Of a DNA stretch of 64,000 nucleotides, positions 3,210-64,000 are shown piece after piece. A program made the position numbers and the translations under genes. The notes under the pieces were generated by a model, which searched no databases, had not been told where the DNA came from, and saw only the letters and a program-made list of their open reading frames with translations. The DNA comes from Octopus bimaculoides (Eukaryota), in assembly GCF_001194135.2 (NCBI RefSeq), contig NC_068988.1:76843615-76907614 (forward strand). The letters run 5' to 3'. The stretch's first letter is position 1; every line of letters starts with the position of its first letter.

Positions 3210-5200
3210 AGACATTAAAAATAAGAATGGGGAATTATACATCCTCAAAAGCTTGTTTATTCTAGTACACATGGGCAAAACCAGCAATATATACCACTTG
3301 AATTATAATCTGTACCACTCTCTAATTAAAAATGAAATTCTGAAAGACTATAAAATAACATCAAAAAACAACCTCATAAATATTAACTTGTAGGCTAAGT
3401 AGTAGAAAGACTGAATTCAGAGAAAAGGATCGAACTCTACCATCATAGAACTCCTAGAATTAAACTGAAGGACCATAAGCCTATCTTCATTACTAATCCC
3501 TTGGTTAGACTTATATGCCTCTCAAAGTCAAATATAGACAGAATTAAGTTTATCATTGACAGACACATACCCAAGCTTAGAAATATAATTAAACTTAACC
3601 TATGGTTTAGTTCATATGAAGTAATTGACTGGTTCACTGACATTAAAGATAAAAAACACAGATCACACAATTAGACATTTCAAATAACAATGCATCCATT
3701 AACCTGATTCTGCTTAATAAAGCATTAATATTTGTGATGAAAAACTCTAGTTTATCTAAAGAAGAAGTAGACATTATACTGACAATCAGAAAATCCATTA
3801 TCGAATTTGATGAGTTTGACATTACCCTGAGATCTAGCAGTTCCACTCAGATAATGGACTTGGTAGGTATTTATATCCTAAAATGTATCAATAATGAATT
3901 TCCACAAATAGGTAGAGTCTAGCAATGTAAACATGGAAAAATACAGAAAAAAGCTATTTAAATTTTCTAAGGTCTATCTCCATTGGGAATGAACATAGTG
4001 ACCTTCTTAGATGTTACCTTGGGTTTGGATACAAGAGAATATCGACCATACCACAAACCCAATGATAACCTTAAATACATTAGTTTTAACTCAAATCATC
4101 CCCAAAATATTACCAGCTCTATTGTCAAAAATGTTTCTATTCATGTTTCTGGACTGCCTGAAAATAAAGCGATCTTTAGAAATATTGAAAAATAATGCCC
4201 TAATCAAAGTTGTATACAAAGATAAATTAGCATACAGGTCATTGTTGACTTACGACTACAATTGGTTCTGACGGACTAGTCGTAAGTTGATTTATTTGTA
4301 AGTCGGCCTGTAGGCCTACATAGCTTTGTTTTATATTTTTACATTCTTAAGGTACATTTTCAGGTAACAGTCACACACAACATTCTGTATTATACTATTA
4401 TACTGGCCTTAGTCAAAAATTTCAGAGTCTCAAGCAGTCACCTTATAAACAAATATGATGTTGCCTCAAAGTCTCCACGACAGGATAGTCATCCAACACA
4501 GTGGCGATTGATAACCAAACCTAGGGGAAGCATTTGTTACCTGACATCATCCATAGATGGGTTAATAAGAAATTAAACCCATTAGATTTCAACTTGACTA
4601 TTTATTGTTGCTGCTGGGAGCTGGTGCACCAATTGTCATAAAGTCGATCGGTTGTAAGTTGTATAGCTTGTAAGTCAACGACGACTTGTATATCCCTAAA
4701 AACGAGACATAGGCAAATTTGAATAGATTCTATGCTTCAAACCAAATAGTTATTAATAATAAAGATAGAAATGTAAAATGAAGAACCATGACAAGGATAT
4801 TGTGACTTGCACTCACCAGATCAAGAATTACTACAATGAAGATAGTTGCATATCAAGTAAAGATGCAAGTATAATCAATCACAATAGTAAACATGCTGAT
4901 AAACTTCTAAGCCAAACATATTCACATAAAAATAAGGCAGCTACTAAAATTAATGGCCACACCCATAAAAGAAAAAAGAAAAATCTTGATATATTATTGT
5001 ATAATACGGTTTCCAGAAAGCAAGTGGCAACAAATATACCTGCAAAAGTTTTCACTGCATTAGATAAGCACTTTCTACAATCTATTAAGTTTAACCAAAT
5101 TTTTAATCATCACATGATTAAGTTTGCATTTTTCACAAGTAATAATCAGCCCAAGTTATTGTGGTACGCAATATTAGGAGGACCAGAGAGTTCAATAATG
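3208..5200 (+). mobile_element. Decayed Penelope-like RT element interrupted by a MITE
   Basis: NPLVRLICLSKSNIDRI..LNLWFSSYEVIDWF; VTFLDVTLGLDTREYRPYHKPNDNLKYISFNSNHP; RKKKNLDILLYNT..VATNIPAKVFTALDKHF..IFNHHMIK are PLE RT/thumb-like motifs. Confidence 0.7.
4235..4688. mobile_element. Tc1/mariner-pogo type MITE
   Basis: Imperfect TIRs caggtcattgttgacttacg / gtaagtcaacgacgacttg, TA on both sides (4233-4234, 4689-4690), no coding capacity. Confidence 0.75.
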
Positions 5201-8826: not shown

Positions 8827-9389
8827 TTTTGGTTGTCCTGCAACTATTGTAGATGACATTTGCATGCCATGCAGTGGAACTGAACTCAATATTATGAGGT
8901 TGGGAAGCAAACTTTTTAATCACACAACAATACTGACACTTAACCACACCTGTGCTCTATGTCACCTTATGCTAATATGACACATACACATATGCAAATT
9001 TATTATATGATTTCTGTTATTGATTTATTGATCAGTTGATTTTGATTAAGACAATGGATCCATCAACCATTTGATTACATAGAAGACAGATATATTCAAC
9101 CTGCCTCTATCATTTTGTTTTTCACTGTAAAAAACTAGTGGTTAGGAGGAAGGGGGAAAGGAGAAATATCTGCATCTATGTTGCTTATCCACTGAGTCAT
9201 TTCTCTACCCGACCACCAGTGTTTTGACAATAAACATGTTATTATGACGCATCTATGGCAACAAGAACTCGATAAATTTTGGCAAGAAACTGAAGAATCA
9301 ATAACTTAAATGGAGAATGTCAGTTGATTGCATTCTTTGTTTTGTCAACTAATTGAGATTAAAATCAATTTCATTAGATTAAAAGAGAT

Positions 9390-47915: not shown

Positions 47916-48410
47916 NNNNNNNNNNNNNNNNNNNNNNNNNNNNNNNNNNNNNNNNNNNNNNNNNNNNNNNNNNNNNNNNNNNNNNNNNNNNNNNNNNNNN
48001 NNNNNNNNNNNNNNNNNNNNNNNNNNNNNNNNNNNNNNNNNNNNNNNNNNNNNNNNNNNNNNNNNNNNNNNNNNNNNNNNNNNNNNNNNNNNNNNNNNNN
48101 NNNNNNNNNNNNNNNNNNNNNNNNNNNNNNNNNNNNNNNNNNNNNNNNNNNNNNNNNNNNNNNNNNNNNNNNNNNNNNNNNNNNNNNNNNNNNNNNNNNN
48201 NNNNNNNNNNNNNNNNNNNNNNNNNNNNNNNNNNNNNNNNNNNNNNNNNNNNNNNNNNNNNNNNNNNNNNNNNNNNNNNNNNNNNNNNNNNNNNNNNNNN
48301 NNNNNNNNNNNNNNNNNNNNNNNNNNNNNNNNNNNNNNNNNNNNNNNNNNNNNNNNNNNNNNNNNNNNNNNNNNNNNNNNNNNNNNNNNNNNNNNNNNNN
48401 GTCTCACAGC

Positions 48411-48444
<34 letters not shown>

Positions 48445-48793
48445 TTAAGGAATGGAGAAAACGCATGTTATAATTGCATACTTTATTCCTACATATGTTT
48501 CAAAGGATTACAACCTATGTGATCCATAGGGATCGGTGATATTAAAATTGTAACCTTCTCTTCGGGGAATGCATGGGAATCATCTTAAACGTAAGACATT
48601 ATGACCGAGTATGAAAACAATAGATGGATAAGGTTATGACGTGATTCATTTGAAAAAAACCGTTAGAGAATTGGACGCTACCGGATAGTGGGTTGGACAA
48701 CACATACATATAAATGTATGAAAACATATATGCATACATAATTACATATACACCTATACACACATACATACATATATATACACATATATATAC

Positions 48794-48826
<33 letters not shown>

Positions 48827-48927
48827 CATATATATATATATATATAAATGTGTTTTATACAGGATAGTGCTACTGTTGTTTATAGCCCCAAAAAGACATC
48901 TCCTCCAGCTGACTAACAACACACAAC

Positions 48928-49316
48928 CTATGTCCGATTAGTATTTGTGAGGGAGCTCATTGCTCCCATCTGTAGTCTTATGTGATACACATGGACTCAA
49001 GTTTCTGGGTGGTTACTCATCCTCAGTGTGTGTTAATCACTAGCTAGTGATGAAAGCTCATTCCACTTGCAAATTACTACATACTTTTCTGGTGACTCAC
49101 TGTCGATGATCTCGTAAAAGAGAGAGAAATGTTATACTAAGTTTCTGAGTGAGATATAAACAGTAGCAGTACAGAATTGTAAACTATATTTGCCAACTAG
49201 CTAATGATTAATGCACACTGAGGATAGGTAACCACTCAGAAACTGGAGTCTGTGTGTATCATGTAAGGTTAGAGATGGGAGTGATGACCTCCCTCGCAAA
49301 TGCTAATTGGACACAG
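48928..49316. mobile_element. Fold-back/MITE with 121-bp inverted arms
   Basis: Arms 48928-49048 and 49196-49316; differences are mostly transitions. Confidence 0.8.
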
Positions 49317-49587
49317 ACTGTGTCGCTAGGGAATTTAAGAAGAAATTTTTTGCATAACTGTATTAATTCCATTATGCAGAAGACAAAATTGACAAAATTT
49401 TGTAAAAATTCATAAAATTAAAAAAAGTTATGAGGGGTGTTAGCACATGCTTACATCATAATGCCACCTTCCTAACATCAATCACTCTGCAGTGGAGTAC
49501 CCCTCGTTGAGTAATTATATATGTATATATGTATGTATGTATGCACACATATATATATATATATATACATATATTTATGTATGTATG

Positions 49588-52239
49588 TCATTATTCAGTT
49601 TATTTCAAGAATGTTTGCCAATAGAGAAAGAGCCGGTCTCTAACTTAGGTTCAAGGCACCTTCAATGGAATTTCAACATCAGCAACAGGGTATGTATGTA
49701 TATATGTATGTATTTATGTGTGTATTTATGCATGTATGTATTTTATCAATCAGTTTCATTTCTGTATTTCTTGTCAATAGAGAAAGAGCCGGACTCTAAC
49801 ATAGATTCAAGGCTCCTTCATTGGAACTTTTATCAACATCATCTAGGTATTTGTGCATAATGTGTGTGTGTGTGCAGTATCTGGTGTTAGTGTATGCGCA
49901 GATTTGTATGTTTGTTTTATGGATGCGTTTTTATGTATATATTTTCATGTCTAGATGCATGCATATGTATTTATGTGCTAAATTTTTGGAAAGTTTTACA
50001 TATCTTTACAACTGTAAAGATATGTAAAACTTTGATGGCTTGAATCTGATGGCTTGAATCTGTAGTCTTCTAATCAGCCTTTTTCTTTCAGGTTTTGAGA
50101 ACCCTAATTTTTCCAGGTTTTTGTTGAGGCAGTTCGTTACATATCCCAATGCCCCAACAATCACGGGTATGAATCTGAACTTGTAGTCTGGGTGGAGTAT
50201 CTGCAAATGTTTCAGTAGCTCGGCATAGTTGTTCTCTTTTTCTCTAATCTTTAATGTGATGTTGACATCCGCAGGACAGCTGATTTCTACTACTGTACAC
50301 AGTTTCTCTTCTCTGTCCCAGATTACTATATCCGGTCTATTATGTCTGCATTTTATTGAGGTTTTTATTGGGACATTCCACCAATACTCTTTCATATTGT
50401 GAGTGGTAATGGCCTCTACCTCATTATGGGTTTCCATCTCCTTAGCCCCGGGGTTATTCTGTCGGCGGATTTCATTGTACAGTGTCTTGGACACAACATC
50501 ATGTCTCATAGGTAGGTAATACCGTGATGACATTTTTGGACAGCTGCTGATACTGATTCCACAGAGTCTGCATCGGTTATTACATTGTGGCGCTTTGCCC
50601 GCCTCTCTGTCCCGTTTGTTTATTAGGAATTTGGTTGGTAGTTCTTGTTCTTGAATAGCAAAGGCATGCCCTTCAAAGTGAGAGTTGGTGACCCGATAGA
50701 CTCCATGATAGACTGCTCTGGTTGTCAATGTTGTTATCACCCTGGAGCTTTCTGTTAACGTATCCATGCATGGTCTTCTGCTGGAATGCATTCATCCTCT
50801 CCTCTGATGTTATGTTACGGTAGAGTCTTGCAATTTGTCTGGGTAAGAGTTCAGGGTTGTCGAATAAGGAATGCTTGCCAAGTAGTTGCCTTTCCAATCT
50901 CATGATGGTATTTACCTCATGTCTGCAGACTTCATCAAGGGGTGCACTTCGACACTTGGTGGTTCTGAGATGATGTCGAAGAGATATGACACGGCGTGTA
51001 TGTATGTATATGTGCAGATTTCTGTTTTGTTTTATGTATGTATTCTCGTGCCTATAGTTACATATCTAGACATGCTCATATATATTTAAATTATAAACTT
51101 CTGGAAAATTTTACAGATTTTTACAGTTCCAGTGATTGATTGAATCTATAGTATCAAATTAGATTTCTCCTTTCTGGTTTTGAGAAGCTTAATTTCTTAA
51201 GATTGGTATTTAGGCAGTATGTTACATATCCTAGGGCCCCAATAATTACAGGAATAAGTCTGAACTTGTAATCTGGATAGAGTAACTGCAGATTTCTCAA
51301 TAGTTCAGTGTAGGTATTCTCTTTTCCAGTGATCTTCAGTTTTATTTTAACATCCATTGGGCAGCTAATTTCCACAACTGTGCACAGTTTCTCTTCTCTA
51401 TTCCAAATCCTTATATCAGGTCTGTTGTGCTTACATTTTATTGAGGGTTTAACTGGGACATTCCACCAGTACTCATTTTTATTATGAGTGGCTATGGTTT
51501 CTACCATACCGTGGGTTCTTATTTCTTTGTCCTTGGGATATCCTTCCAACGGATTTCATTATATATGTCCTAGTTAGAACATCATAACTCATTGGTAGAT
51601 AATACTGTAATGACATTTTTGGACAACTGCTTATGATGTGGGTGATACCTTCAGTGTTAACTCCACAAAGTCTATATCAATTGTCATATTTTACTGCTTT
51701 TCCTGCATCTCTATCCCTTTTGTGCATCAGGTATTTGGTTAATATTTCCTGCTCCTGGATTGCAAATGCATACCCTTCAAAGTGAGAGGTAGTAATCCAG
51801 TTGCTGGTCCATGATAGACTGCCTTGATTATCAATGTGACTATCATCTTAAATCTTTCTAATGATATATGAATTATCTTCTGCTCATATATGCTTATCCT
51901 TTCATCTGATGATACATTGCAGTGGAGTCGTGCGACTTCTTTGGGCATGTATTTAAGGTTATTAGACAAGGAATGTTGCTCAAGGAGCTACCTTCTAAGT
52001 CTCATGATGTTTTCAGCCTCATGTATGCAAACTTGTTCAAGAGATCCACCTTGACACTTGGTGGTTAAAAGATGTTGCCAAAGAGATATGATATGACATT
52101 CAAAGGCATTTTGGATTGATGTTAAACCTCTGCCGCCTTGTTTACCATTTTGGTTGAGGTAGCCTACGTCATTCTTTATTTGGAAATTATGTGTAGTTGT
52201 TAGTATTTTCCAGGTTTTCACATTAATGGCCCAGATTGC
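49588..52239 (-). mobile_element. R4/Dong-like RLE retrotransposon copy B (5' truncated), split by copy A
   Basis: 3'-terminal module 49588-49689; body 50996-52239 with KQGGRGLTSIQNAFEC, CCHC finger, NRPDIRIWNREEKLCTVVEISCP, IPVIIGALG. Confidence 0.8.
49745..50995 (-). mobile_element. R4/Dong-like RLE retrotransposon copy A (divergent subfamily, 5' truncated)
   Basis: ORF 50006-50791: FEGHAFAIQEQE, CRLCG..SSCPKMSSRYYLPMRHD, RPDIVIWDREEKLCTVVEISCP (PD..E), IPVIVGALG. Confidence 0.88.
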
Positions 52240-52960
52240 ATGTATGTATGTTGCTGGCTTTGGAGCAAGAGAAAGGAGTTAAGCTGGAGGCCGGGAGGAG
52301 ATGAGGAGCTGTGATTTGGCCAACTCTCCTGACCCACCAATGGGAGGGTATTACAGTTTAGGGTCGAAACGCCCAATGAACATTGGATACTGTCTGATGA
52401 CATCAGTTCCTCCTGGCCAAGGCTCCATCCACTTTGGTGAATGAAAAAAGCACCTCCTTATAGGTGTTACATCTGTTTGTTGTTTATATGCCTATCTTCG
52501 TCTTTTGTTTTTCTGTAAATTTAAACTATATATGTATAAGTATATATGTAAAAGTAAGATCCAAGGTTCCAGGTGTAGGAAGTTAGTAAGCTTCGAGCAG
52601 TATGTAGAAGGTATAAAAAACAACTTTCAGGAACAATAGTGGGTTTTTTTGGTGTAGAAGGGTGTAAATTTTTCCCATATCGAAGTTTGATAAGCAGAAA
52701 AATGTTATTTTATAGTTCACAGTTAGCAACTAGGGTGCTAGGTATGTGAATACAAATCCAAATTTAGGGAATGGAGCAGGTAAAATTTAGGCAACATATG
52801 TTTCTCAAAAGTAGTAATTACTCAATAAGGGGTACTCCACTGACTACTCATCAAGCGAAAGATATCTTAGTTAAATGAAGGTTACATTGTCATCAAGAGA
52901 TCTCAAGTTAACTTGCAGGAAATTTGATTGAAATATGGATTTTTATGTATATGTATGTAT

Positions 52961-54231
52961 GTCATTATTCAGCTTATTTCAAGATTTCTTGCCAATAGAG
53001 AAAGAATCGGTTTCTAACCTAGATCCAGCACTCCTTCATTGGAATTTTAACATCAACAACAGGTTATTTTTGTTTGTACGTATGTCTTTTGTATGTATGT
53101 ATGTCTTTTGTATGTTCGTATGTCTTTTGTATGTTCGTATGTCTTTTGTTTGTATGTGTGTCTTTTGAGAAATCTCAAGTTGAGCATGAGAAAGTAAGGA
53201 GGGATGTCAGGAAGGGCATCACTGTTGCACTTCCAGATGGTAAGGGTCTTCCTATGATGCTGACATGCAGTGTCTGTGCAAGACCCTGCTCCAGTAAAGT
53301 TGGGCTCATGAGTCATCTTCGTAGTCATAAAGCGAGACCAATGATTGATTACCAGGCTGTTGGTGATGATGCTACACACCATACAAATCATATCTGTCAG
53401 GCATGTGGAAGGGAGTGTAATTCGATGGGAGGACTTAAATGACATGCAAAGATACATGAAGCCCAATTACAATTACAGCTGGCTATTGCCAGTAACGGTT
53501 TTAGCTGCCAATTCTGTCCAAGACATTGTAGATCTTTAGCTGGGCTAAAAGTCACATTTGATCACAGCACTGTTAACAGTTAAGCCTTGTGCATTGGCCA
53601 TACTCAATAACGAGGGGGCAGCCATCATGTATGTATGTGCAGATTTATATGTTTTATGTATGTATTCTCATGCATATAGTTACATGCTCATATATATTTA
53701 AATGATAAACTTCTGGAAAGTTTTAGAGATTTTTACAGTTCCAGTGATTGATTGAATCCATAGTATCGAATTAGATTTCTCCTTTCTGGTTTTGAGAAGC
53801 TTAATTTCTCAAGATTGGTATTTAGGCAGTGTGTTACATATCCCAGGGCCCCAATAATTACAGGTATAAACCTGAACATGTAATCTGGATAGAGTAACTG
53901 CAGATTTCTCAATAGTTCAACATGTGTTCTCTTTTTCACTGATCTTCGGTTTTATGTTAACATCCACTGGGCAGCTAATTTTCACAACTGTGCACAGTTT
54001 CTCTTCTCTATCCCAAATCATTATATCAGGTCTGTTGTGCTTGCATTTTATTGAAGTTTTCACTGGGACATTTCACCAGGATTCCTTTACATTACGAGTG
54101 GCTATAGCTTCTATCATATTCTGGGTTTTTATTTCTTTGTCCTCGGGATTATCTTTCCAATGGATTTCATTATAGAATATCCTAGCTATAATGTCATGCC
54201 TCATCGGTAGATAATACCGTAATGACATTTT
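52961..54231 (-). mobile_element. R4/Dong-like RLE retrotransposon copy C (5' truncated)
   Basis: 3'-terminal module 52961-53063; body 53627-54231 near-identical to copy B (YYLPMRHD, RPDIMIWDREEKLCTVV). Confidence 0.85.
53165..53626 (+). mobile_element. RTE-like LINE 3' fragment with three C2H2 zinc fingers, inserted in copy C
   Basis: CSVCARPCSSKVGLMSHLRSH; CQACGRECNSMGGLK*HAKIH; CQFCPRHCRSLAGLK(fs)SH; RTE-like end ctcaataacgagggggcagccatc. Confidence 0.65.
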
Positions 54232-54326
54232 ATGTATGTATATGTGTGTGTATGTATGTATGTATGTATGAATGTATGTATGTATGTATATATGTATGTA
54301 TGCATATATGTATATACACATATATA

Positions 54327-54371
<45 letters not shown>

Positions 54372-54444
54372 CAGGGAAAATGATATATTAGTGGACAGTC
54401 AATGGCACTTCTGTGCATCTGCACATTTTCATTTTTTTTTTATA

Positions 54445-54680
54445 CTAGCTGATGTACCATTCTAATTCCCAGAAAAGCGAGAAACTATTGAAAAAGTTGC
54501 AAGATGCAATGAAAATTTTAGAAAAATGAAAAACGAAATAAGTGGAAATTTTACCGGAGAGAGTGTTAAATTATAAGGCACCAAAAGAGAATGACTCTTC
54601 CCAGACATAACAGAATATGCTTCAACACACGAAATCACATAAAGAATCTTGCAAACCAAATCCAAAAGCGAAATATATTC
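54445..54680 (-). mobile_element. Helitron 3' end fragment
   Basis: a|ctagctgatgtaccattctaattcccagaaaa is homologous to the Helitron end at 55530. Confidence 0.5.
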
Positions 54681-54682
54681 AT

Positions 54683-54713
<31 letters not shown>

Positions 54714-54950
54714 CATATGCATATACATATATTCATGCACACACACATATATATGCATATATTCATACACACACACACACACACACACTCACACATATAT
54801 ATATATACACATATTCATTCATTCATACATGCATATATATATATATATATAATACGGATAAAAATTCAAATTTACAGGTGAAAACTCAATTAAATTCAAT
54901 TTATCAAAAATTAAAATTAAATTAAGTTTCACAGTATATAATATCTAAAT

Positions 54951-55506
54951 ATATAATTTAGAGAAAAGAACCAAAGTTCATGAACTTATCCATGAAAATC
55001 CACAGTCACACATAGAAAAATTTAATAAGTAAATACACTAAAAAGAACTATAATAAAATACAAAGTAATAATCATTAAAATAATAAAATAATAAAATGAC
55101 TACACGTGTTTCATAACCAAATTTTCAAATAGAAAATCAAATCAAATCAAATTGATTAAAATAGATCGATCGAAAATCAATTCTATTCAAAAATATAGCT
55201 AATTGTCTGGTCAAAATACAACACTAATAATGTATATATATCAACCAACAATAAATAACAAATGAATTTATATAAAAATACTTATTATATCAAGAAGTAA
55301 AAGTACTTTATTTTACTAATAAATAAAAGAAAAATATTTAATGATATTGTATTGCACACAACTGGACGTTTTATTATTTCAATGATTATTACTTTGTATT
55401 TTATTATCGTTCTTTGTAGTGTATTTATTTATTAAATTTTTCTATATGTGACTGTAGATTTTCATGGATAAGTTCATGAACTTTGGTTCTTTTCTCTAAA
55501 TTATAT
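54951..55506. repeat. 138-bp-arm inverted repeat (fold-back)
   Basis: Arms 54951-55088 and 55369-55506, few mismatches, AT-rich 280-bp spacer. Confidence 0.88.
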
Positions 55507-55627
55507 ATATATATACATATATTCATACACTAGCTGACATACCCGGTAATTCCCGGGAAAGCAGGGCTTATCCCTTGGTTCTGTTCTCATAATTGTTTCG
55601 CTAATCCAGTAACAACAATACAAAGTA

Positions 55628-56909
55628 TTGGGTTGTCCGGAAAGTTCATGCTGATTTTTAAAGGAAAGAAAAAGGTCAATAAATACTTGCCATTACATTT
55701 TTAATCAACCAAATATGAACCATCTTGTTGCACAGTGTGTTTCCACCTTTCCTTTAACTTGAAAATGAATACTCTTTTCCCCAAATTGAGGTGGTTTCAT
55801 GGCAAAGAATTCATCAAGGTATCTTTTTACGTCATCCAAGGAATTGAAATTTTTACCATTAAGACTATTCTGCAGAAACCTGAATAAGTGGAAATCCGAA
55901 GGAGCAATATCTGGTGAATATGGACGGTGGGGTAACACATCCCAGCCGAGCTGCAGCAATTTTTGTCTGGTTCCCAAAGAAACGTGCGGTCTTGCATTAT
56001 CATGTTGGAAAACAACACCCTTCCTGTTGACCAATTCTGGACTCTTTTGAATTGCTGCTTTTAACTCGTCCAGTTGTGTTCAGTATTTCTCAAAATTAAT
56101 TGTCTGGTTACTTGGGAGAAGCTCATAGTACAGAATTCCTTTCCAATCCCACATGACACAAAGCAAGACTTTTCTAGGGTGAAGACCCACTTTTGGGGTG
56201 GCTAAGGATGGCTCATGTCGCTTACTCTAGGATCGCTTTCTCGGAACATTTCGGTAGATAATCCATTTCTCATCACCTGTCACATTTTGCTTTAAAAAAG
56301 GCGTGTTTTCATTCCGTTTATAAAGCGAATCACTGATGGAAATGTGATCCAAAAGGTTCTTCTCACTCAACTCATGTGGTACCCAAACATCGCAGCGATT
56401 TGTGTACCCGAGCTTTACCAGGTGCTCATGAATGACGGATTTTGATAGGTTGAGGCTTTCTGCCAATTCTTGGGTTGTACAATGTGGGTTATTCTCAATT
56501 AATGACTTGATTTGGTCATTATCTGTAGTGGATGGTCTGCCTGATCGCTCTTTATCAATAAAGCTACAATCCCAGCTTGGAACCTTGCGAACCACTTCCG
56601 AACAGTTCTTTCGGATAAAGAAACACCACCGTAAATTGCGCATGTTTCTTTGGTTGCTTGTGAGGCATTTTTCCCTTTATGGAAAAAAAAGCATCAAGTG
56701 CTGAAAATGAACTTTCTTGTCTTCCATTTTAAAGGGTTACAGAATTAACACAGGTTAAAGGAACATAAACCTTCTTCCACGAAAAGATAGCTTAAACTCT
56801 GCTCTAAATGGAGGTGTAGTCAAATCCTATTTCATGGACTCAACCATGTTCTAAAATAAGTCAAAAATTTAGCTACTAAAAATCGGCATGAAATTTCCGG
56901 ACAACCCAA
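55628..56909 (-). mobile_element. Full-length mariner (mellifera-like), 1282 bp
   Basis: 33-bp TIRs (2 mismatches), TA TSD at 55626-55627 and 56910-56911. Confidence 0.95.
55705..56727 (-). pseudogene. Mariner DD34D transposase pseudogene
   Basis: RSGRP, WVPHEL, VTGDEKW, HDNARPH, YSPDIAPSDFHLF; stops and frameshifts. Confidence 0.93.
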
Positions 56910-57799
56910 TATGTAGTCCTTAAAACGGTTTTTGTGCATTTATTGAGAATACCAAACTGTCTTACACAGGATCTTGTTTTTAGCAATTCCCAATAAGTTA
57001 TGAATACCCAAATTGTGAAGTCAGTTATGTAATAACATGAAATTAAGTAAATATTAGTAAATATTCAAATAAAGTAGCTGTGAAAAGGACTTTAATACGT
57101 CCCCAGAGTGTATACAACTTAGGAGGAAATACTAATAAGGTATATATACTAAAATTGTGAAGCATGTTATGCAATAACAGGCTAATTAGATATGAAATAA
57201 TAACAATTCTAAGTAAATAACTCTGAAAAAAGCTTTTGAGCATTCGCAGAGAATATTACCCTCAGTGGCGTTAGTGTTGATATATTCGTGAATAAGTCAC
57301 TAACTGAAATAAGTGTATCTATTGTTTAGGAAAATACTATTTACTTCTTTAAGTGTTGTACTGGATAAATTGTGAAAATAACTCAAATAGTTCAAATACT
57401 AAGAAATAAGCACACTCAATTTGATTTATACAAAATAATTTACGAACATGAATGAGTTATTTCCCTTGGCTATATATAAGGATCCCTTTCATGAGTGAAT
57501 GGGTTATTTCCTTTGGATGTTCAAAAAGAATATATTAGTTATATGTAGCAGATATAAGAATCCCTTCCAGGTGCCCTATTATTGACTTTTTCAACAATCT
57601 AAGTATGTCACTAATGTTCGAGACATGAGCTCTACTCACGTGTCAATTTTCATCAAAATCACTAAAGCAATGTAAGAGGAGTTAGATAACAATGCCACAA
57701 ACACACCCACAGATTTCTCCATGTGTAGTAGATTTTTGCTACAGTTTACATGAAATTTTTTCAAACGTTTTTCCACACGCACGCGCACGCGCGCGCACA

Positions 57800-57945
57800 C
57801 ACACACACACACACAAAACGAGCTTCTTTCAATTTCTGTTTATTAAATCTACTTAAAGACTTTGGTTGCCTGGGCCTAGAGAAGAAAACATCTGCTCAAG
57901 GTGCTACACAGTAGGACTGAACCCCAAATCATAGACATGCCTTCA
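57800..57945 (-). mobile_element. OK-like SINE 5' portion, decayed
   Basis: Reverse complement ggggttcagtcctactgtgtagcaccttgagcagatg..gaaattgaaagaagctcg. Confidence 0.65.
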
Positions 57946-58329
57946 CCCCAGTACATACATATATGTGTATGAATGTAATGTATATATGTGTATGTATGTA
58001 CAATACGTATGTATGCATGTACATAGGTAGGTAGGGAGGGAGGGAGGGAAGGAAGGAGGGAGAGAGGGCAGTAACCAGCTAGGTTACGTAAGTGGGCAGA
58101 TAGGTAGGTCGGTAGGTAAATGTGTAGGCAGGTAGATAGGTCTGTAGGTAAGTAGGCAGGTAGGTGGGTAGGTGGGTATGTAGGTTGGTGGATAGATATG
58201 TATGCATGTAGGTAGGTAAAACTTACTTGGAAAAGGATGCATGGCATTTGATCATACAATAATATAAATAATATAAATATATGCATATATACATACATAT
58301 ATGTACATACCTACATATATATGTACAGG

Positions 58330-58570
58330 ACACCAAAAAAATGAAGACAGAATGAGAAATGAGAACATAAAAAACAAAAATATAGAAAACGAACATTTTT
58401 TGAACAACGAAAAAAACAGAAACGAGACATGCAACATAAAGAACATTCCCCTCATCAGTTGTCCCCTGTTTTATCTACTCTACATTTTGAAGGTAAGGAC
58501 AAGACGCATCTTCCTTAAAACAGTCCTTTCCACAAGGTAAGTTAAACAAAATTTGGGATTTTTTGTAGAG
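58330..58570 (-). repeat. Penelope-3'-type repeat module homologous to 27780-27980
   Basis: Shared ccaaatttt..actgtttta..aaaacag..acaact(g/t)atga.ggg..ttcgttgttc motifs. Confidence 0.55.
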
Positions 58571-59134
58571 GGTGAAAGTGGTAATAAAAACAGGACAGGG
58601 CGAACAAAACAGTAAAAACAAACGGTGAAGGCTGATAAACCAAGACGATGTGAAGTGGTGAACGCTGGAAAAACGAGATAGGTAGGTGGGTAGGTAGGTA
58701 TGTGTTAGTTCCAGTTCTTTGTTTTTGGTTCCCTGCAGCCTACATCTATTGTTAAACCACATCTGATGACACAGCTTGCAAGCTTCTCTGTAAATTGCAT
58801 CCAAATCTTATTTGATGGAAATAGTTGCTAATTTAATTATTGGACCCATGTTTTAATCTTTGGCAAAGCATGTTAGGAACATAATCTTTTGAAAGCTAAT
58901 TACTCAAATCGCAACAGTTTAAATGACATGGAGATGTCTCACTGAGGGAGAGGAAATCTAGCCTCTATAATTAAAGGAACGTTTTAGTTTTGGAAACTTA
59001 AAGTTATGCATTTGAATCTCACAATATTCAACTAATAAAATCACAACAATAACAACATTTTCATCTTTCCTGCAACACTCCTACTCAGATGAAAAAGTAT
59101 TGTGTGAGACAGGCAACTACTATGTTATAAACTA

Positions 59135-59560
59135 TTAATTCAACTCCATGACAGCTCTGTAAATATTGCATGTAAGACAAGGTATTACTGGATAATAAAT
59201 TGTTGGGTGAAATCTATGACAACTTCGTGAAATAGTTGTGTGTGTAAGATAGGAGAGGGCATGGAAGAATCTTACAAACCTGCATTGAAATTTCCAACTG
59301 TCTGACAGATACTCTCCAGAATTCTCCAGATGCACCAATGTGGACATAGACAAACTGCACCAGATCATCCAGATCATATCTAGAGTGTTCTGTAGACTAG
59401 TAGATAGGGATAGCATAGGCTGTTTAAAGTGGACAGCTACACAAACTATAAATTTGTGATCTGTGCAGTAGATCTAGATAGGCATTGTAGGTGGCACTAC
59501 CAAGAGGCATTGCTTTCTTTGGCCAGGAAGGGCAGGCCGTGTTTACCTATCTAGCGGCCA
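59135..59560 (+). mobile_element. Tx1/L1-like APE endonuclease fragment
   Basis: Reverse-complement homology to 63690-63850 (FQLSDRY, SRxYLDRV). Confidence 0.65.
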
Positions 59561-61365
59561 AAAAGTTTGTGTCATGAATCAGACTGAAAGGGCTAAAGAT
59601 ACTTTCCTTTTTGGCCCAGTCCTCATCAACTTATTCATGTTCTACTTGAAAAAAAAACCTGGGACCAATGGAGTGAAGTGTCTGCTTGTAAATTCATTGA
59701 AAGGCTGATGCAGGTGATGAATATGGTAAAATGAATGGGTCTGCACTGAGCACGTGAGTTTGAATTGGAGGAACACTGAATGAAAAGGCACTCATCTAAA
59801 CGGTCAGAGTGACCATACTTTTGTGGGGTTGTCAAAGGTAGTCCTTGGAGACTTGTCACCCTGAGGAATCTTTTCATTATTATCTTCTTGTTGTAAATCC
59901 GTGTACTCATACAGACCCCTCTGTGTTTAACTGTTTTGTACAAATGTTCTTTGCACCTTTTATGTAGGCCCTTATGGCCAATAAAGAAACGATTATCATT
60001 GATACTGTTGTTGTTGTTGTTGTTGTTACTATTATTATTATAAGCATTATCATCAGCATTGCCATATTTGTAAAATCTGTGTCTTTGGGTTCTTGTGCCA
60101 TATTACTGATCTTTTCCCTCCAAGCTGTTTGATAACTGAAATGTAATGTTATAAATATTAGGTCTCAGCCAGATTTAAATATATTCCCCATGGGAGACAC
60201 CAAAAGACTTGCAGGAACTCACCAATATCTTAAAACTGTCAGGATTTTAATATTTCATTTATAATTATTCTATAGAACTGTTCACAACAACAACAGCTGC
60301 AATAGTGTCCACTGCAGTGGAAGAATCAGCAATATACAATAAAATTTAAAATAGTAAAATCAATTTTTAAAATATTGAAATAGTAAAATTAATTTTAAAA
60401 AAAATACATCAAAATAGTTTGTTTTTATAAATTTTACATTTGGTCATATTCTGAAGCTATTTACCATTTAGTTCTGAAAGTAGCCGCATAATAATGAATC
60501 AATTGTTAATACAAAGAGAAAAGAGGATTTATTTCTTATTGGCTTCATCAAAGAATTTGCCAAATCTTTTCACATGAAAAGTAAAGAATACAATTAAAAG
60601 ACAAAAAAAAAGCCAAAAAACTCAAAGAATAGGAAGTCTATTTTGATGTTAATCTTCTTTATTTATTTGGAACCAAAACCATAAATTATTCAACCTTCAC
60701 TAATACAAGAGACAAGAAACAAAGATACATAGAATTGATATTCTTTGGAATTTTAATTTTCTGTTTTCATATGCATGGTTAAATTTGTATTCTAGTTTTA
60801 TATCTGCTGGTTTTTCAGTATTTTCAATAATCTGCATCAAAAATTCTTTAAGTTTCTTTTTTGCCATTTTTACCAAACAAATACCAGATGAATTCAAAGC
60901 ATTTTTTAAAAGAATTGATGAAAAAAATTAACTTCATCATGACTGAGGAAAGGAAAAAGAAAAGTCATTAAGGAAAACATAAAAAATTTGACATTTTAAG
61001 AAGGAAAGTGATTGTATGACCTTAATGCCTTTCCCACATGAATTAAAAATAGTAGTGAAAATGGGTCACACACACTCATCATGCTAGGATAATAAAGTGC
61101 AACAATAAATATTTCTCGCAGAAACAGAGGACCACAGCTGAAAAAAAAAGGTGATCATGTAGTACTCATGATTATCTTAGGAACATAGGTGATACAAGCA
61201 AAGAGTAATGACTACAACAGGGAAACATAGATAATGTAAGGTTTTACAAACCTTATATTGTTATTGTTACAAGAGCAGTAGCAGATGCAGCAGATGCAGC
61301 AGAAGCAGCAGAAGCAGCAGAAGCAGTAATAGTAACAACAACAATAAAAGCTGTCAACATTACAG

Positions 61366-61507
61366 AGGCACAGTCATGGTTGTGTGGTAACAAACTAGCT
61401 TCCCAACCACGTGGCTCTAGGTTCAGTCCCACTGCATGGCACCTTGAGCAAGTGTCTTTTACTACAACCTCAGGTTGATCAAAGCTTTGTGAGTGGACTT
61501 GGTAGCA
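61366..61507 (+). mobile_element. OK-like SINE 5' portion
   Basis: tggttgtgtggt, ggttcagtcccactgcatggcaccttgagcaagtg, gctttgtgagtggacttggtag. Confidence 0.75.
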
Positions 61508-61789
61508 ACAAGGGAGTACAAGATGACAGTCAGCCAAAACTTTCGTTATGCTGTCTCTCTTCTTTCACCTCTTTGTGGGGTTAATAATCTTAATCTTTAG
61601 TTACAATTTCTCATTCAAACTACATAATAGGCAGAATTGTTGGATTAAGACAGTAGGGTGTTTTGAGGGAGATTTGGCTGCTATTTCTACCAGGTCCAGC
61701 TACCATGAAGAAGTCTGAATTCAATTTTCATTCACATATTTGCATTTCAAAAATTTAACATAATCTTTTCCATAAATCAACTCACATTT

Positions 61790-63230
61790 TCTATGAATAG
61801 CTCTAGTATTGTTTTCGTCTTCAGATTCCACATTTTGTTAATTTCTATTTCAAGATCTTTATATTTGCTCAGTTTTTGGTAGGTCTTGACAGATACGTTT
61901 ATATCAATTGGGACAGTCATATCGATGAGGAGGCATGATTTTTGTCTGAAGTCTTTCAGTATGATGTCTGGCCTATTTGCGTCTATCTTTCTGTCAGTTT
62001 GAATGGTGAAGTTCCAGAGGAGTGCAATGTGATCATTTTCAAGTACTGGGGGTGGTTTGTGTTCCCACCAGTTTTTATCATGGAGCAAGTCCAGGTTTTT
62101 GCATATTACCCAGTGAATATATTGTGCAGCTCTATCATGCCTGTTGAGATACTCTGTAGGCACAAGCAGACTGCACATGGAGACAACATGATCGATGGTC
62201 TCATTTTGTNNNNNNNNNNNNNNNNNNNNNNNNNNNNNNNNNNNNNNNNNNNNNNNNNNNNNNNNNNNNNNNNNNNNNNNNNNNNNNNNNNNNNNNNNNN
62301 NNNNNNNNNNNNNNNNNNNNNNNNNNNNNNNNNNNNNNNNNNNNNNNNNNNNNNNNNNNNNNNNNNNNNNNNNNNNNNNNNNNNNNNNNNNNNNNNNNNN
62401 NNNNNNNNNNNNNNNNNNNNNNNNNNNNNNNNNNNNNNNNNNNNNNNNNNNNNNNNNNNNNNNNNNNNNNNNNNNNNNNNNNNNNNNNNNNNNNNNNNNN
62501 NNNNNNNNNNNNNNNNNNNNNNNNNNNNNNNNNNNNNNNNNNNNNNNNNNNNNNNNNNNNNNNNNNNNNNNNNNNNNNNNNNNNNNNNNNNNNNNNNNNN
62601 NNNNNNNNNNNNNNNNNNNNNNNNNNNNNNNNNNNNNNNNNNNNNNNNNNNNNNNNNNNNNNNNNNNNNNNNNNNNNNNNNNNNNNNNNNNNNNNNNNNN
62701 NNNNNNNNNNNNNNNNNNNNNNNNNNNNNNNNNNNNNNNNNNNNNNNNNNNNNNNNNNNNNNNNNNNNNNNNNNNNNNNNNNNNNNNNNNNNNNNNNNNN
62801 NNNNNNNNNNNNNNNNNNNNNNNNNNNNNNNNNNNNNNNNNNNNNNNNNNNNNNNNNNNNNNNNNNNNNNNNNNNNNNNNNNNNNNNNNNNNNNNNNNNN
62901 NNNNNNNNNNNNNNNNNNNNNNNNNNNNNNNNNNNNNNNNNNNNNNNNNNNNNNNNNNNNNNNNNNNNNNNNNNNNNNNNNNNNNNNNNNNNNNNNNNNN
63001 NNNNNNNNNNNNNGCTCCTTTCCCTCATCACTGAGTGCTTGATATTGTCCCCTTCATTATCAAGGCCAAATTGCATCCTGATGTCATCACTGAATTGTTT
63101 AAAAATCGCTAGTAGGCCTTTGAGCTGTTGGTCATTTTTTGCAAAGAGCTTTAAATCATCCATGTAAATGAGATGATTTATATTTTTATCAAATATTTTA
63201 TAACCATACTGTGCATCATTGAGCAATTTT
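61790..63230 (-). mobile_element. R4/Dong-like RLE retrotransposon, second family (spans a gap)
   Basis: INHLIYMDDLKLFAK (RT); CSLLVPTEYLNRHD, NRPDIILKD..LLIDMTVP, KLSKYKDLEIEI (RLE). Confidence 0.88.
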
Positions 63231-64000
63231 GAGTGCGGTATTAGGGCTAGACAGAAGAAGACTCACACATCTGTCCTGGATCAGTTATCATTTGCCTTTC
63301 ATGGTTTAGCAAGGATCAAATCGTGGATTCATTGCCACACTGTGCCTCTGTTACCCGGGCCCACTGAATGGTTTTCATCCCTTCATGTCCAAGTGCTTGC
63401 GCCTTAGCTCTGACAATACAACCTTCATGTTTCGTGTTGAAGAATTGGTCGAATGCCAATCTCGCTGTGAGCACATCGGTCATGATGCCTTTTCTAAAAG
63501 TCTTGCCTAACTTCTTGACTAGCTCTGTCTCTACTCTGTTTTGTTCTACTGCTAGTCCTTTGCTAAACCTTATTGATTCGATTATAATTGCCTTTTTAAG
63601 TGTGAACCACCATTTGCTGTTGATTATTGCTCCTGTCAATGCCCTCTTAACTAGTTCTCTAATCCAGTTTCTGAAATCTTTATCTGCTACTCTACAAACT
63701 ACCCTATCTAGATACAACCTGGATGACCTGATGCGGTTTGACCAGTCCTGCACTGACACATCCAGGAAATTCGATCGATATCTGTCAGACAGCTGAAATC
63801 GTCTAAGCAGGTTTGCAAGGATTTTGCACCCTCCTTTCCTATCTACTAAACCTACACAGTCTCACTTTACACTTAAATTCCATTTCAATCTCCCACTCTC
63901 AGACTAAAGCATGAGATGTTCATAGGAAAGTTTCCAGATGTCTGAAGAAATCTGGTCATTCTGCCCCTATCGGGGCATAGACAGAAACTAGCCTAAAAAT
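63231..64000 (-). mobile_element. Tx1/L1-like LINE ORF2 fragment (APE + linker)
   Basis: FRLVSVYAP, DFFRHLETFL, FQLSDRY, WSNRIRSSRLYLDRVVCR, KWWFTLKKAI, HEGCIVRAK. Confidence 0.75.

Follow-up and report, generated by a model that had tools for sequence, protein, structure and literature searches.

Several lineages of long interspersed nuclear elements (LINEs) insert specifically into microsatellites. Dong targets (TAA)n and Waldo targets ACAY repeats by means of an apurinic/apyrimidinic endonuclease (APE) (PMC3812793), and Kibi and Koshi are specific for TC and TTC repeats (PMC3812793, PMC4640811). Togen of fish targets (TG)n and some HERO families are microsatellite-specific (PMC4640811). 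Here we analysed a 64,000-nt stretch of the Octopus bimaculoides genome (RefSeq assembly GCF_001194135.2, contig NC_068988.1, positions 76,843,615 to 76,907,614 of the forward strand), hereafter the window, which holds three truncated copies (A, B and C) of a LINE predicted to encode a restriction-like endonuclease (RLE). Microsatellite-specific LINEs being already known, what is new and well supported here is the specificity for (ACAT)n or (ACTT)n together with a conserved hairpin at the 3' end of the element. That the element carries its own target and nests into itself, as proposed in the first-pass annotation of this DNA, is a reasonable and testable hypothesis.

Like the octopus lineage, Dong (R4 clade; Bombyx, Anopheles and Biomphalaria) has a single open reading frame (ORF) in which the reverse transcriptase (RT) is followed by a CCHC knuckle and an RLE, and it inserts into a microsatellite in a specific orientation (PMC3812793, PMC4640811); the target of the octopus-type lineage is a tetranucleotide repeat, (ACAT)n or (ACTT)n, whereas that of Dong is (TAA)n. 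Waldo, a member of the R1 clade, has an ACAY target that is essentially the same as that of the octopus lineage (PMC3812793), but it carries an N-terminal APE, whereas the octopus lineage has a C-terminal RLE and no APE. Because the endonucleases differ, the likeness of the two targets is a case of convergence. HERO of leech and Togen of fish are also RLE LINEs with microsatellite specificity (PMC4640811), and HERO likewise occurs in a lophotrochozoan; the target of Togen, (TG)n, differs from that of the octopus lineage.

The three copies have the same orientation, as the first-pass annotation had it: all lie on the minus strand according to blastn, which found no further copies in the window. 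They are dead, 5'-truncated non-LTR (long terminal repeat) retrotransposon copies, all truncated downstream of the RT core, and they form two loci, M0-A-B and MC-C, where M0, MA and MC denote ~100-nt modules of the 3' untranslated region (UTR). The features are as follows, with positions counted from the start of the window and upstream and downstream given in the sense of the element.

49516-49587, unstranded: compound (TA)n/(ATGT)n microsatellite downstream of M0, a putative target remnant and/or tail.
49588-49689, minus strand: module M0, an orphan LINE 3' end of ~102 nt with the terminus ...AATAATGA followed by CATACAT, and a hairpin at ~49632-49657.
49690-49741, minus strand: ACAT-rich tract, the interval between MA and M0; under nesting it would comprise the rest of B's internal tract and A's tail.
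49742-49849, minus strand: 3' terminal module MA, contiguous with copy A and second-best in the window by nhmmer.
49850-49905, minus strand: internal tract of copy A, a degenerate ACAY stretch that includes (CA)7 and connects the proximal UTR to MA.
49906-50995, minus strand: copy A, 5'-truncated at 50995 and made up of a coding remnant and the proximal 3' UTR (49906-50005).
50996-51015, minus strand: remnant of the internal tract of copy B, ACATATACATACATACAC, joined directly to the 5' end of A.
51016-52239, minus strand: copy B, proximal UTR and coding remnant, 5'-truncated at 52239.
52240-52251, unstranded: (ATGT)3 immediately upstream of copy B.
From this (ATGT)3 to the tail of MC: ~690 nt of other sequence between the two LINE loci.
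52944-52961, unstranded: ATGT-type tract downstream of MC.
52962-53065, minus strand: module MC, a LINE 3' end that lies downstream of, but apart from, the body of copy C.
53068-53167, minus strand: array of a 19-nt, ATGT-derived unit (TTTTGTATGTACGTATGTC on the plus strand), 5.3 copies with 90% matches, adjoining MC.
53161-53626, plus strand: 5'-truncated 3' end of an unrelated LINE with C2H2 fingers, splitting the body of C from MC.
53627-53638, unstranded: (ATGT)3 between the 3' end of the foreign LINE and the proximal UTR of C.
53639-54231, minus strand: copy C, proximal UTR and coding remnant, 5'-truncated at 54231.
54232-54371, unstranded: (ATGT)n-(TG)n-(TA)n array upstream of copy C.

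All six junctions reported by the first-pass annotation abut ATGT repeats, namely the 3' ends of M0, MA and MC (49588, 49742 and 52962) and the 5' truncations of A, B and C (50995/6, 52239/40 and 54231/2). Perfect ATGT runs of at least three units account for 104 of the 4,900 bases inside the block and for 12 of the 54,147 non-N bases of the window outside it, far in excess of background; these tracts are on the plus strand throughout, i.e. they read (ACAT)n in the sense of the element. Both window loci carry the same repeat in the same orientation on both flanks. Loci of relatives were picked from other animal-derived assemblies by protein identity alone, the flanks playing no part in the choice. 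Locus L002 holds an RT-truncated copy between (CATA)142 upstream and (TACA)110 downstream, and L004 a 3.35-kb copy flanked by (ACAT)n arrays roughly 700 and 800 nt long; L005 has (ACAT)50 upstream and (ACAT)3 downstream, and the 3' end of L009 reads ...TAATGA followed by ACATACAT, that is, (ACAT)n at the 3' side. An (ACTT)n repeat is found on both flanks at L006, which has two copies, one of them full-length, and on both sides at L011, with 20 units upstream and 5 downstream. The repeat is on the sense strand of the element in every case. The (CATA)n/(ACAT)n specificity put forward earlier is thus confirmed by same-strand flanks at L002, L004, L005 and L009 (3' end), and the lineage inserts with a fixed orientation into microsatellites of tetranucleotide units, which are (ACAT)n or, in sister families, (ACTT)n. 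This adds a tetranucleotide target common to several animal groups to those of the known microsatellite-specific RLE LINEs. Two further loci (L003 and L010) lie on contigs of at most 704 nt that do not contain 3' ends, and the Hydractinia locus (L007) is an internal fragment with no flanking repeats.

The 3' ends of L005 (10960-11059) and L011 (10854-10953) are clearly homologous (TTTAGAAYCGG...TAATAATGGAATATAT), yet they adjoin (ACAT)n and (ACTT)n, respectively. Because the ends are homologous and the repeats differ, the choice of repeat has switched within the lineage, and the comparison points to a recent switch. The two families form a natural pair for studying site choice by R2-like enzymes, which is relevant to current work on the retargeting of R2-type enzymes.

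The element is an RLE-type LINE with one ORF, at the end of which lie a CCHC knuckle and a PD-(D/E)xK restriction-like endonuclease. The RLE type had been proposed earlier and is supported by a C-terminal profile that matches R2, by an RT nearest to that of R2 and by the lack of an APE. The best PDB matches of the C-terminal domain profile (A1, 21 sequences) are the R2 proteins 9nl3 and 9dou (E 0.002); in the alignment to R2, CRLC...H...C falls on the CCHC knuckle and RPD / E-I-S / K..Y on KPD / D-V-T / K..KY, and both the CCHC and the PD-(D/E)xK motifs are almost invariant across the 21 homologues. The relative at L004 encodes 1038 aa in two frames with an RVT_1 domain (Pfam, E 8.5e-25), and the solved structures nearest to its RT are again R2 proteins (1e-27). 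The domains detected in the relatives are RVT_1 and zf-RVT only, and Pfam found an APE (Exo_endo_phos) neither in the 1038-aa ORF of L004 nor in the N-terminal ORF that the full-length copy at L006 carries. In this full-length copy (copy 1), the 5' end follows the array directly and the ATG is at 4696; no zinc finger (ZF) or Myb motif was found in its N-terminal 291 aa.

R2 provides the nearest solved structures for both the RT and the CCHC/RLE region, but the octopus lineage does not fit the R2 clade, which is characterized by N-terminal ZF and Myb motifs and a 28S ribosomal DNA target: its flanks are microsatellite and the full-length relative lacks ZF and Myb in its N-terminal part. Neither does it fit the clade of Waldo (R1), with an APE and an R1-clade RT, as no APE is found, an RLE is present and the RT is nearest to R2. 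The candidate clades are R4 (R4, Dong and Rex6), the label given in the first-pass annotation, and HERO, and the two are equally eligible. Octopus repeat surveys annotate both Dong-R4 and Hero, and list Dong-R4 as abundant and as one of the LINE groups with the most recent activity (PMC13282606).

A second, unrelated RLE-type LINE is present as fragments at 61852-63262 on the minus strand (NRPDIILKD...IDMTVP...KYKDLEIEI). It is split by an N gap at 62210-63013, shows 33-44% aa identity to the L004 ORF and has no ACAT flanks.

Among the window copies, B and C are 87.5% identical over 622 nt, A and B 70.2% over 1126 nt, and A and C 71.9% over 612 nt (blastn); the copies are 11-30% diverged. As had been noted earlier, the body of B is nearer to that of C than to that of A, 112 informative sites supporting this pairing against 22 and 28 for the others, and the body of B has no adjacent module. 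A and B are distinct subfamilies, about 74% identical. The ORF of copy A (50006-50791, 261 aa) has an intact PD-(D/E)xK part (NRPDIVIWD...VVEISCP...K), and its CCHC motif is partially deleted, the segment bearing the His being missing. Pfam gave no significant match for this ORF alone; it has 82 homologues, some with RVT_1 or zf-RVT. The coding remnant of copy B extends to about aa 654 of the 1038-aa relative. Copy A keeps a single frame over 219 aa, whereas B has at least three frameshifts and C at least one; A is therefore younger than B. The closest named relatives are from O. bimaculoides, and the only named octopus homologue (P0058, O. bimaculoides CM046628, locus L001) comprises just an internal part, within sequence that includes 6.7 kb of N. 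A coding 17-mer, TAYTGGTGGAATGTCCC, was found at 106 metagenome loci, none of which (0) has protein homology; these are chance matches.

The ~100-105-nt module is considered to be the true 3' end of the lineage. It belongs to the element, as the first-pass annotation held, being homologous to the contiguous end of the 3' UTR in relatives: at L002, L004, L005, L009 and L011 the last ~100 nt before the repeat are contiguous with the ORF and contain no internal microsatellite. When the whole window was searched on both strands with an nhmmer profile of six non-octopus 3' ends, from which the microsatellite had been excluded, M0 was the top match (E 0.0028) and MA the second (E 1.4), and the next had E = 6. 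When the three modules are aligned to five foreign ends, one hairpin is predicted, located in M0 at about 49632-49657, in which GCC..GAACCTA pairs with TAGAGAC..GGC. The hairpin is 85% paired, with both sides changed in eight of ten pairs; none of 500 shuffles reached the observed values, and controls slid along the alignment paired at 50% or less. The non-octopus sequences alone predict the same hairpin. A covariance model (R1) that included the octopus modules recovered the held-out end of L011 (E 9e-4) and that of L006 copy 2 (E 0.06) at the exact positions, and no other site in 212 kb. The hairpin is thus conserved through compensatory changes. Pairwise, the similarity of the L009 UTR to the modules is marginal, its score being reached by 3, 1 and 72 of 500 shuffles for M0, MA and MC, respectively. 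The module core CCGGCTCTTTCTCTATTGRCAA had no match (0) in the metagenome scans. R2 protein recognizes the RNA of its own 3' UTR; by analogy, the hairpin of the octopus lineage most likely serves as an RNA handle for RT binding, and it offers a concrete RNA element for RT-binding tests.

Copies A, B and C share an ORF-proximal UTR that ends in ...AAATCTGC(A/G)C, and in all three an ACAY-type repeat follows at that same position. In B this is ACATATACATACATACAC, an ACAT tract of 18-20 nt followed by the 5' end of A; in C it is ATACATACAT, followed by the 3' end of the foreign LINE; and in A it is ~55 nt of degenerate ACAY/(CA)7, followed by MA. B and C therefore stop at an identical point of the UTR, AAATCTGCAC with 12-18 nt of ACAT after it, and it is there that the tract of A is located. 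The extra ORF-proximal segment (...AAATCTGCRC) and the ACAY tract before the module are confined to the octopus-type copies, i.e. the three copies in the window. The position of the tract is conserved in two subfamilies, and both B/C-type copies (2/2) are interrupted there, each interruption consisting of one element followed by a module in the same orientation. The arrangement of body, ATGT-rich tract and terminal module described earlier for each copy holds as a contiguous structure in A, where the tract is degenerate ACAY/(CA)7 instead of the (ATGT)n that had been reported; in C it is split by the 19-mer array and the 460-bp LINE, neither of which had been recorded.

The most economical reading of this arrangement, to which we incline, is nesting into the internal tract. 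Thus it seems rather probable that the tract is itself an insertion site, which received A in the case of B and the unrelated LINE fragment in the case of C. As regards recurrent insertion, there is one candidate case of self-insertion, A in the tract of B, besides the foreign LINE that occupies the corresponding UTR position of C. Nesting takes two events at each locus, and the alternatives need three in one specific order. Because only one of seven modules among the relatives (about 150 kb) is an orphan, two chance pairings of a module-less body with an orphan module are unlikely. The first-pass annotation had inferred that A inserted into the tract of B: position, order, orientation and the lesser decay of A agree with this, and the module comparison on which it relied is not significant. 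Without the flanking microsatellite, M0 and MC are 83.3% identical, M0 and MA 80.0%, and MA and MC 79.4%; the larger difference given by blastn (82% for M0-MC against 76% for M0-MA) is raised by the shared microsatellite. M0 is therefore nearer to MC than to MA in nominal terms, as had been stated, and the informative sites (11, 8 and 8; p = 0.65) do not make this significant. A comparison of modules with bodies had been expected to pair M0 with the body of B; the modules by themselves give no significant pairing of M0 with MC. Of the earlier phrase "nests into itself", one candidate insertion stands, and its target is a related family, A and B being separate subfamilies. The case for nesting comprises one self-insertion, into a related subfamily, and one foreign insertion at the same site, and a single locus is not proof.

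In this lineage the endonuclease would nick the (ATGT)n strand, and the nick would prime reverse transcription at the 3' end of the element (target-primed reverse transcription), with the RT binding the 3' hairpin of the module RNA. If nesting is the correct reading, the younger copy A, with its own module MA, would have integrated into the tract of B and left B's module as the orphan M0, and the unrelated LINE fragment would have integrated into the tract of C and displaced MC. Since every insertion of this sort splits a microsatellite into two half-arrays that are themselves new targets, an internal tract would add to an existing process and not create it. Were the tract to act as a target, it would give the transposon a simple way to multiply its landing sites and to spread the microsatellite, which would be of relevance to octopus genomes, given the recent activity of Dong-R4 LINEs there.

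To our knowledge, no Dong element has been described that carries its own target within the 3' UTR. Candidate nesting has a parallel in Zepp of Chlorella and Coccomyxa, a LINE that prefers its own copies and forms nested clusters (PMC3446292). Zepp is of another clade and is associated with centromeres or telomeres, whereas nesting in octopus amounts to one or two events. We know of no action of Zepp via a microsatellite in its own UTR.

Several observations weigh against nesting into the tract. The branches amount to 8, 8 and 11 changes per ~100 nt for the modules and to 28, 22 and 112 per ~590 nt for the bodies, and the divergence of M0 and MC is about double that expected of the cognate ends of B and C (p about 0.01 by a rough Poisson estimate made by hand). 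At L006, independent insertions, including an orphan 3' end of 100 nt, are piled up in one array. The contiguous order of body, tract and module is known from A alone, with a degenerate tract, and the tract from the three window copies only. A covariance model of non-octopus sequences only finds M0 and MA at E about 5 (window ranks 2 and 4), and a profile of the three octopus modules had no match at the other loci. In addition, a target-like internal tract would also be expected to yield module-less copies by internal priming and ~100-nt copies by microhomology, and the locus lies on a gappy scaffold of short-read type.

One alternative is a pile-up without nesting, which we regard as possible though doubtful. 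It supposes five independent (ACAT)n-targeted insertions into two pre-existing arrays. B and C would lack modules since the nicked (ATGT)n primer annealed to the internal (ACAU)n tract and not to the 3' end of the RNA, and M0 and MC would be ~100-nt copies resulting from cDNA that was linked to the target through microhomology at the tract; a tract identical to the target predicts both classes of product. L006 offers a precedent, in that two copies within one (ACTT)n array enclose an orphan 3' end of 100 nt that belongs to another family, and the flat module distances, with M0 and MC more diverged than B and C, also agree with it. However, the pile-up takes more events (three against two per locus) and needs one order out of six at each locus plus a matching orientation, and orphan modules are as rare as 1/7 in relatives. 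Moreover, the conserved hairpin module suggests a need for it in retrotransposition, so that priming without the module would be rare.

Another possibility is that two elements are involved, the LINE ending at ...AAATCTGCAC(ACAT)n and the module being a separate short non-autonomous element with the same microsatellite target. B and C do end at the tract with no module, each module has ACAT-type repeats on both sides, and the distances between modules are decoupled from those between bodies. We nevertheless judge this improbable: at L002, L004, L005, L009 and L011 the homologous, hairpin-bearing terminal region directly continues the ORF, with no microsatellite between, MA is only 56 nt from the proximal UTR of A, and all three modules lie downstream of a body in the same orientation. 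An assembly artefact, in which a short-read assembly joined unrelated copies at shared ATGT k-mers and the order M0-MA-A-B is unreal, is very improbable. The window does contain 12 N runs, and the locus is rich in repeats and microsatellite, but the block itself (48401-62209) is free of gaps. Several junction tracts are 12-20 nt long, below the usual assembly k-mers; the 11-30% divergence makes the copies distinguishable; and contigs of long-read style from other species show a like architecture. Finally, the idea of an element without target preference, with an (ACAT)n 3' tail, brought along or newly made, that lengthens afterwards, which might be suggested by the fact that many LINEs end in simple repeats and by the repeat tail of the unrelated LINE at 53161-53626, is scarcely credible and already contradicted, because the 5' flanks are also same-strand (ACAT)n, the arrays upstream of L005 and L011 are far longer than those downstream (50 and 20 units against 3 and 5), the sequence upstream of the L005 array is not the 3' end of an element, and the full-length L006 copy starts directly after the array.

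Beyond nesting itself, we tentatively suggest, with distinctly less assurance, a joint process in which each insertion re-plants a tract of the element's own target, the tract, serving for internal priming and joining, sheds orphan modules and module-less bodies, and read-through of head-to-tail pile-ups re-assorts bodies and modules. If true, this would be a self-propagating system of microsatellite and retrotransposon that builds nested arrays in genomes where these LINEs are highly active, and the exchange of bodies and modules between subfamilies by read-through would explain the decoupled distances. Were the internal tract to act as a target, repeat annotation would also be dividing such elements among the labels "LINE", "simple repeat" and "unknown short repeat". 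At L006 (8125-9170), the UTR of copy 1 is followed by (TAAG)51, the target repeat in the opposite orientation, a 100-nt module (9042-9141), (ACTT)6 and copy 2. This module is either a foreign orphan end or part of a second body-microsatellite-module architecture. Speculatively, copy 1 may be read as body-(TAAG)51-module, which would hint at recombination of bodies and modules via arrays, for example by read-through.

The foreign LINE in copy C (53161-53626) is a 460-bp 5'-truncated 3' end on the plus strand. It has three C2H2 fingers at the C terminus and shows 60% identity to P0083 and 83% to a UniRef entry from O. bimaculoides. It terminates at 53626 in ...GGCAGCCATC, in agreement with the end of a copy at L008, where the tail is (AT)n; with (ATGT)3 as its tail here, this LINE may itself seed or prefer AT/ATGT repeats. 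A candidate target-site duplication around MC (ATCTCAAGTT, at ~52.90 and 53.17 kb) was rejected: the right copy belongs to the coding part of the foreign LINE, the left one lies 35 nt from the tail, and the interval between B and MC has no homology to the foreign LINE.

Between 48.4 and 55.5 kb, Rfam returned only sub-threshold microRNA models, on microsatellite. The matches to mir-3149, mir-297 and other microRNA models at 48744-48843, 49517-49585 and 54248-54363 are far under the gathering scores and spurious, and a suspected hammerhead (GAAAC...CTGATGA, ~52.37 kb) is unsupported by Rfam. The M0-A-B block is bracketed by a 28-nt inverted pair, CAGTGGAGTACCCCTYRTTGAGTAATTA, at 49490-49517 and 52815-52842 (26/28 matching), which shows no clear target-site duplication. 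The pair resembles the terminal inverted repeats of a miniature inverted-repeat transposable element (MITE) or DNA transposon whose internal microsatellite took the LINE. Meanwhile, two longer inverted repeats, both foldback- or MITE-like, are found at 48921-49048 / 49196-49323 (128-nt arms, 82% identity) and at 54957-55088 / 55369-55500 (132-nt arms, 95% identity, 280 nt apart), and they sit on either side of the LINE block.

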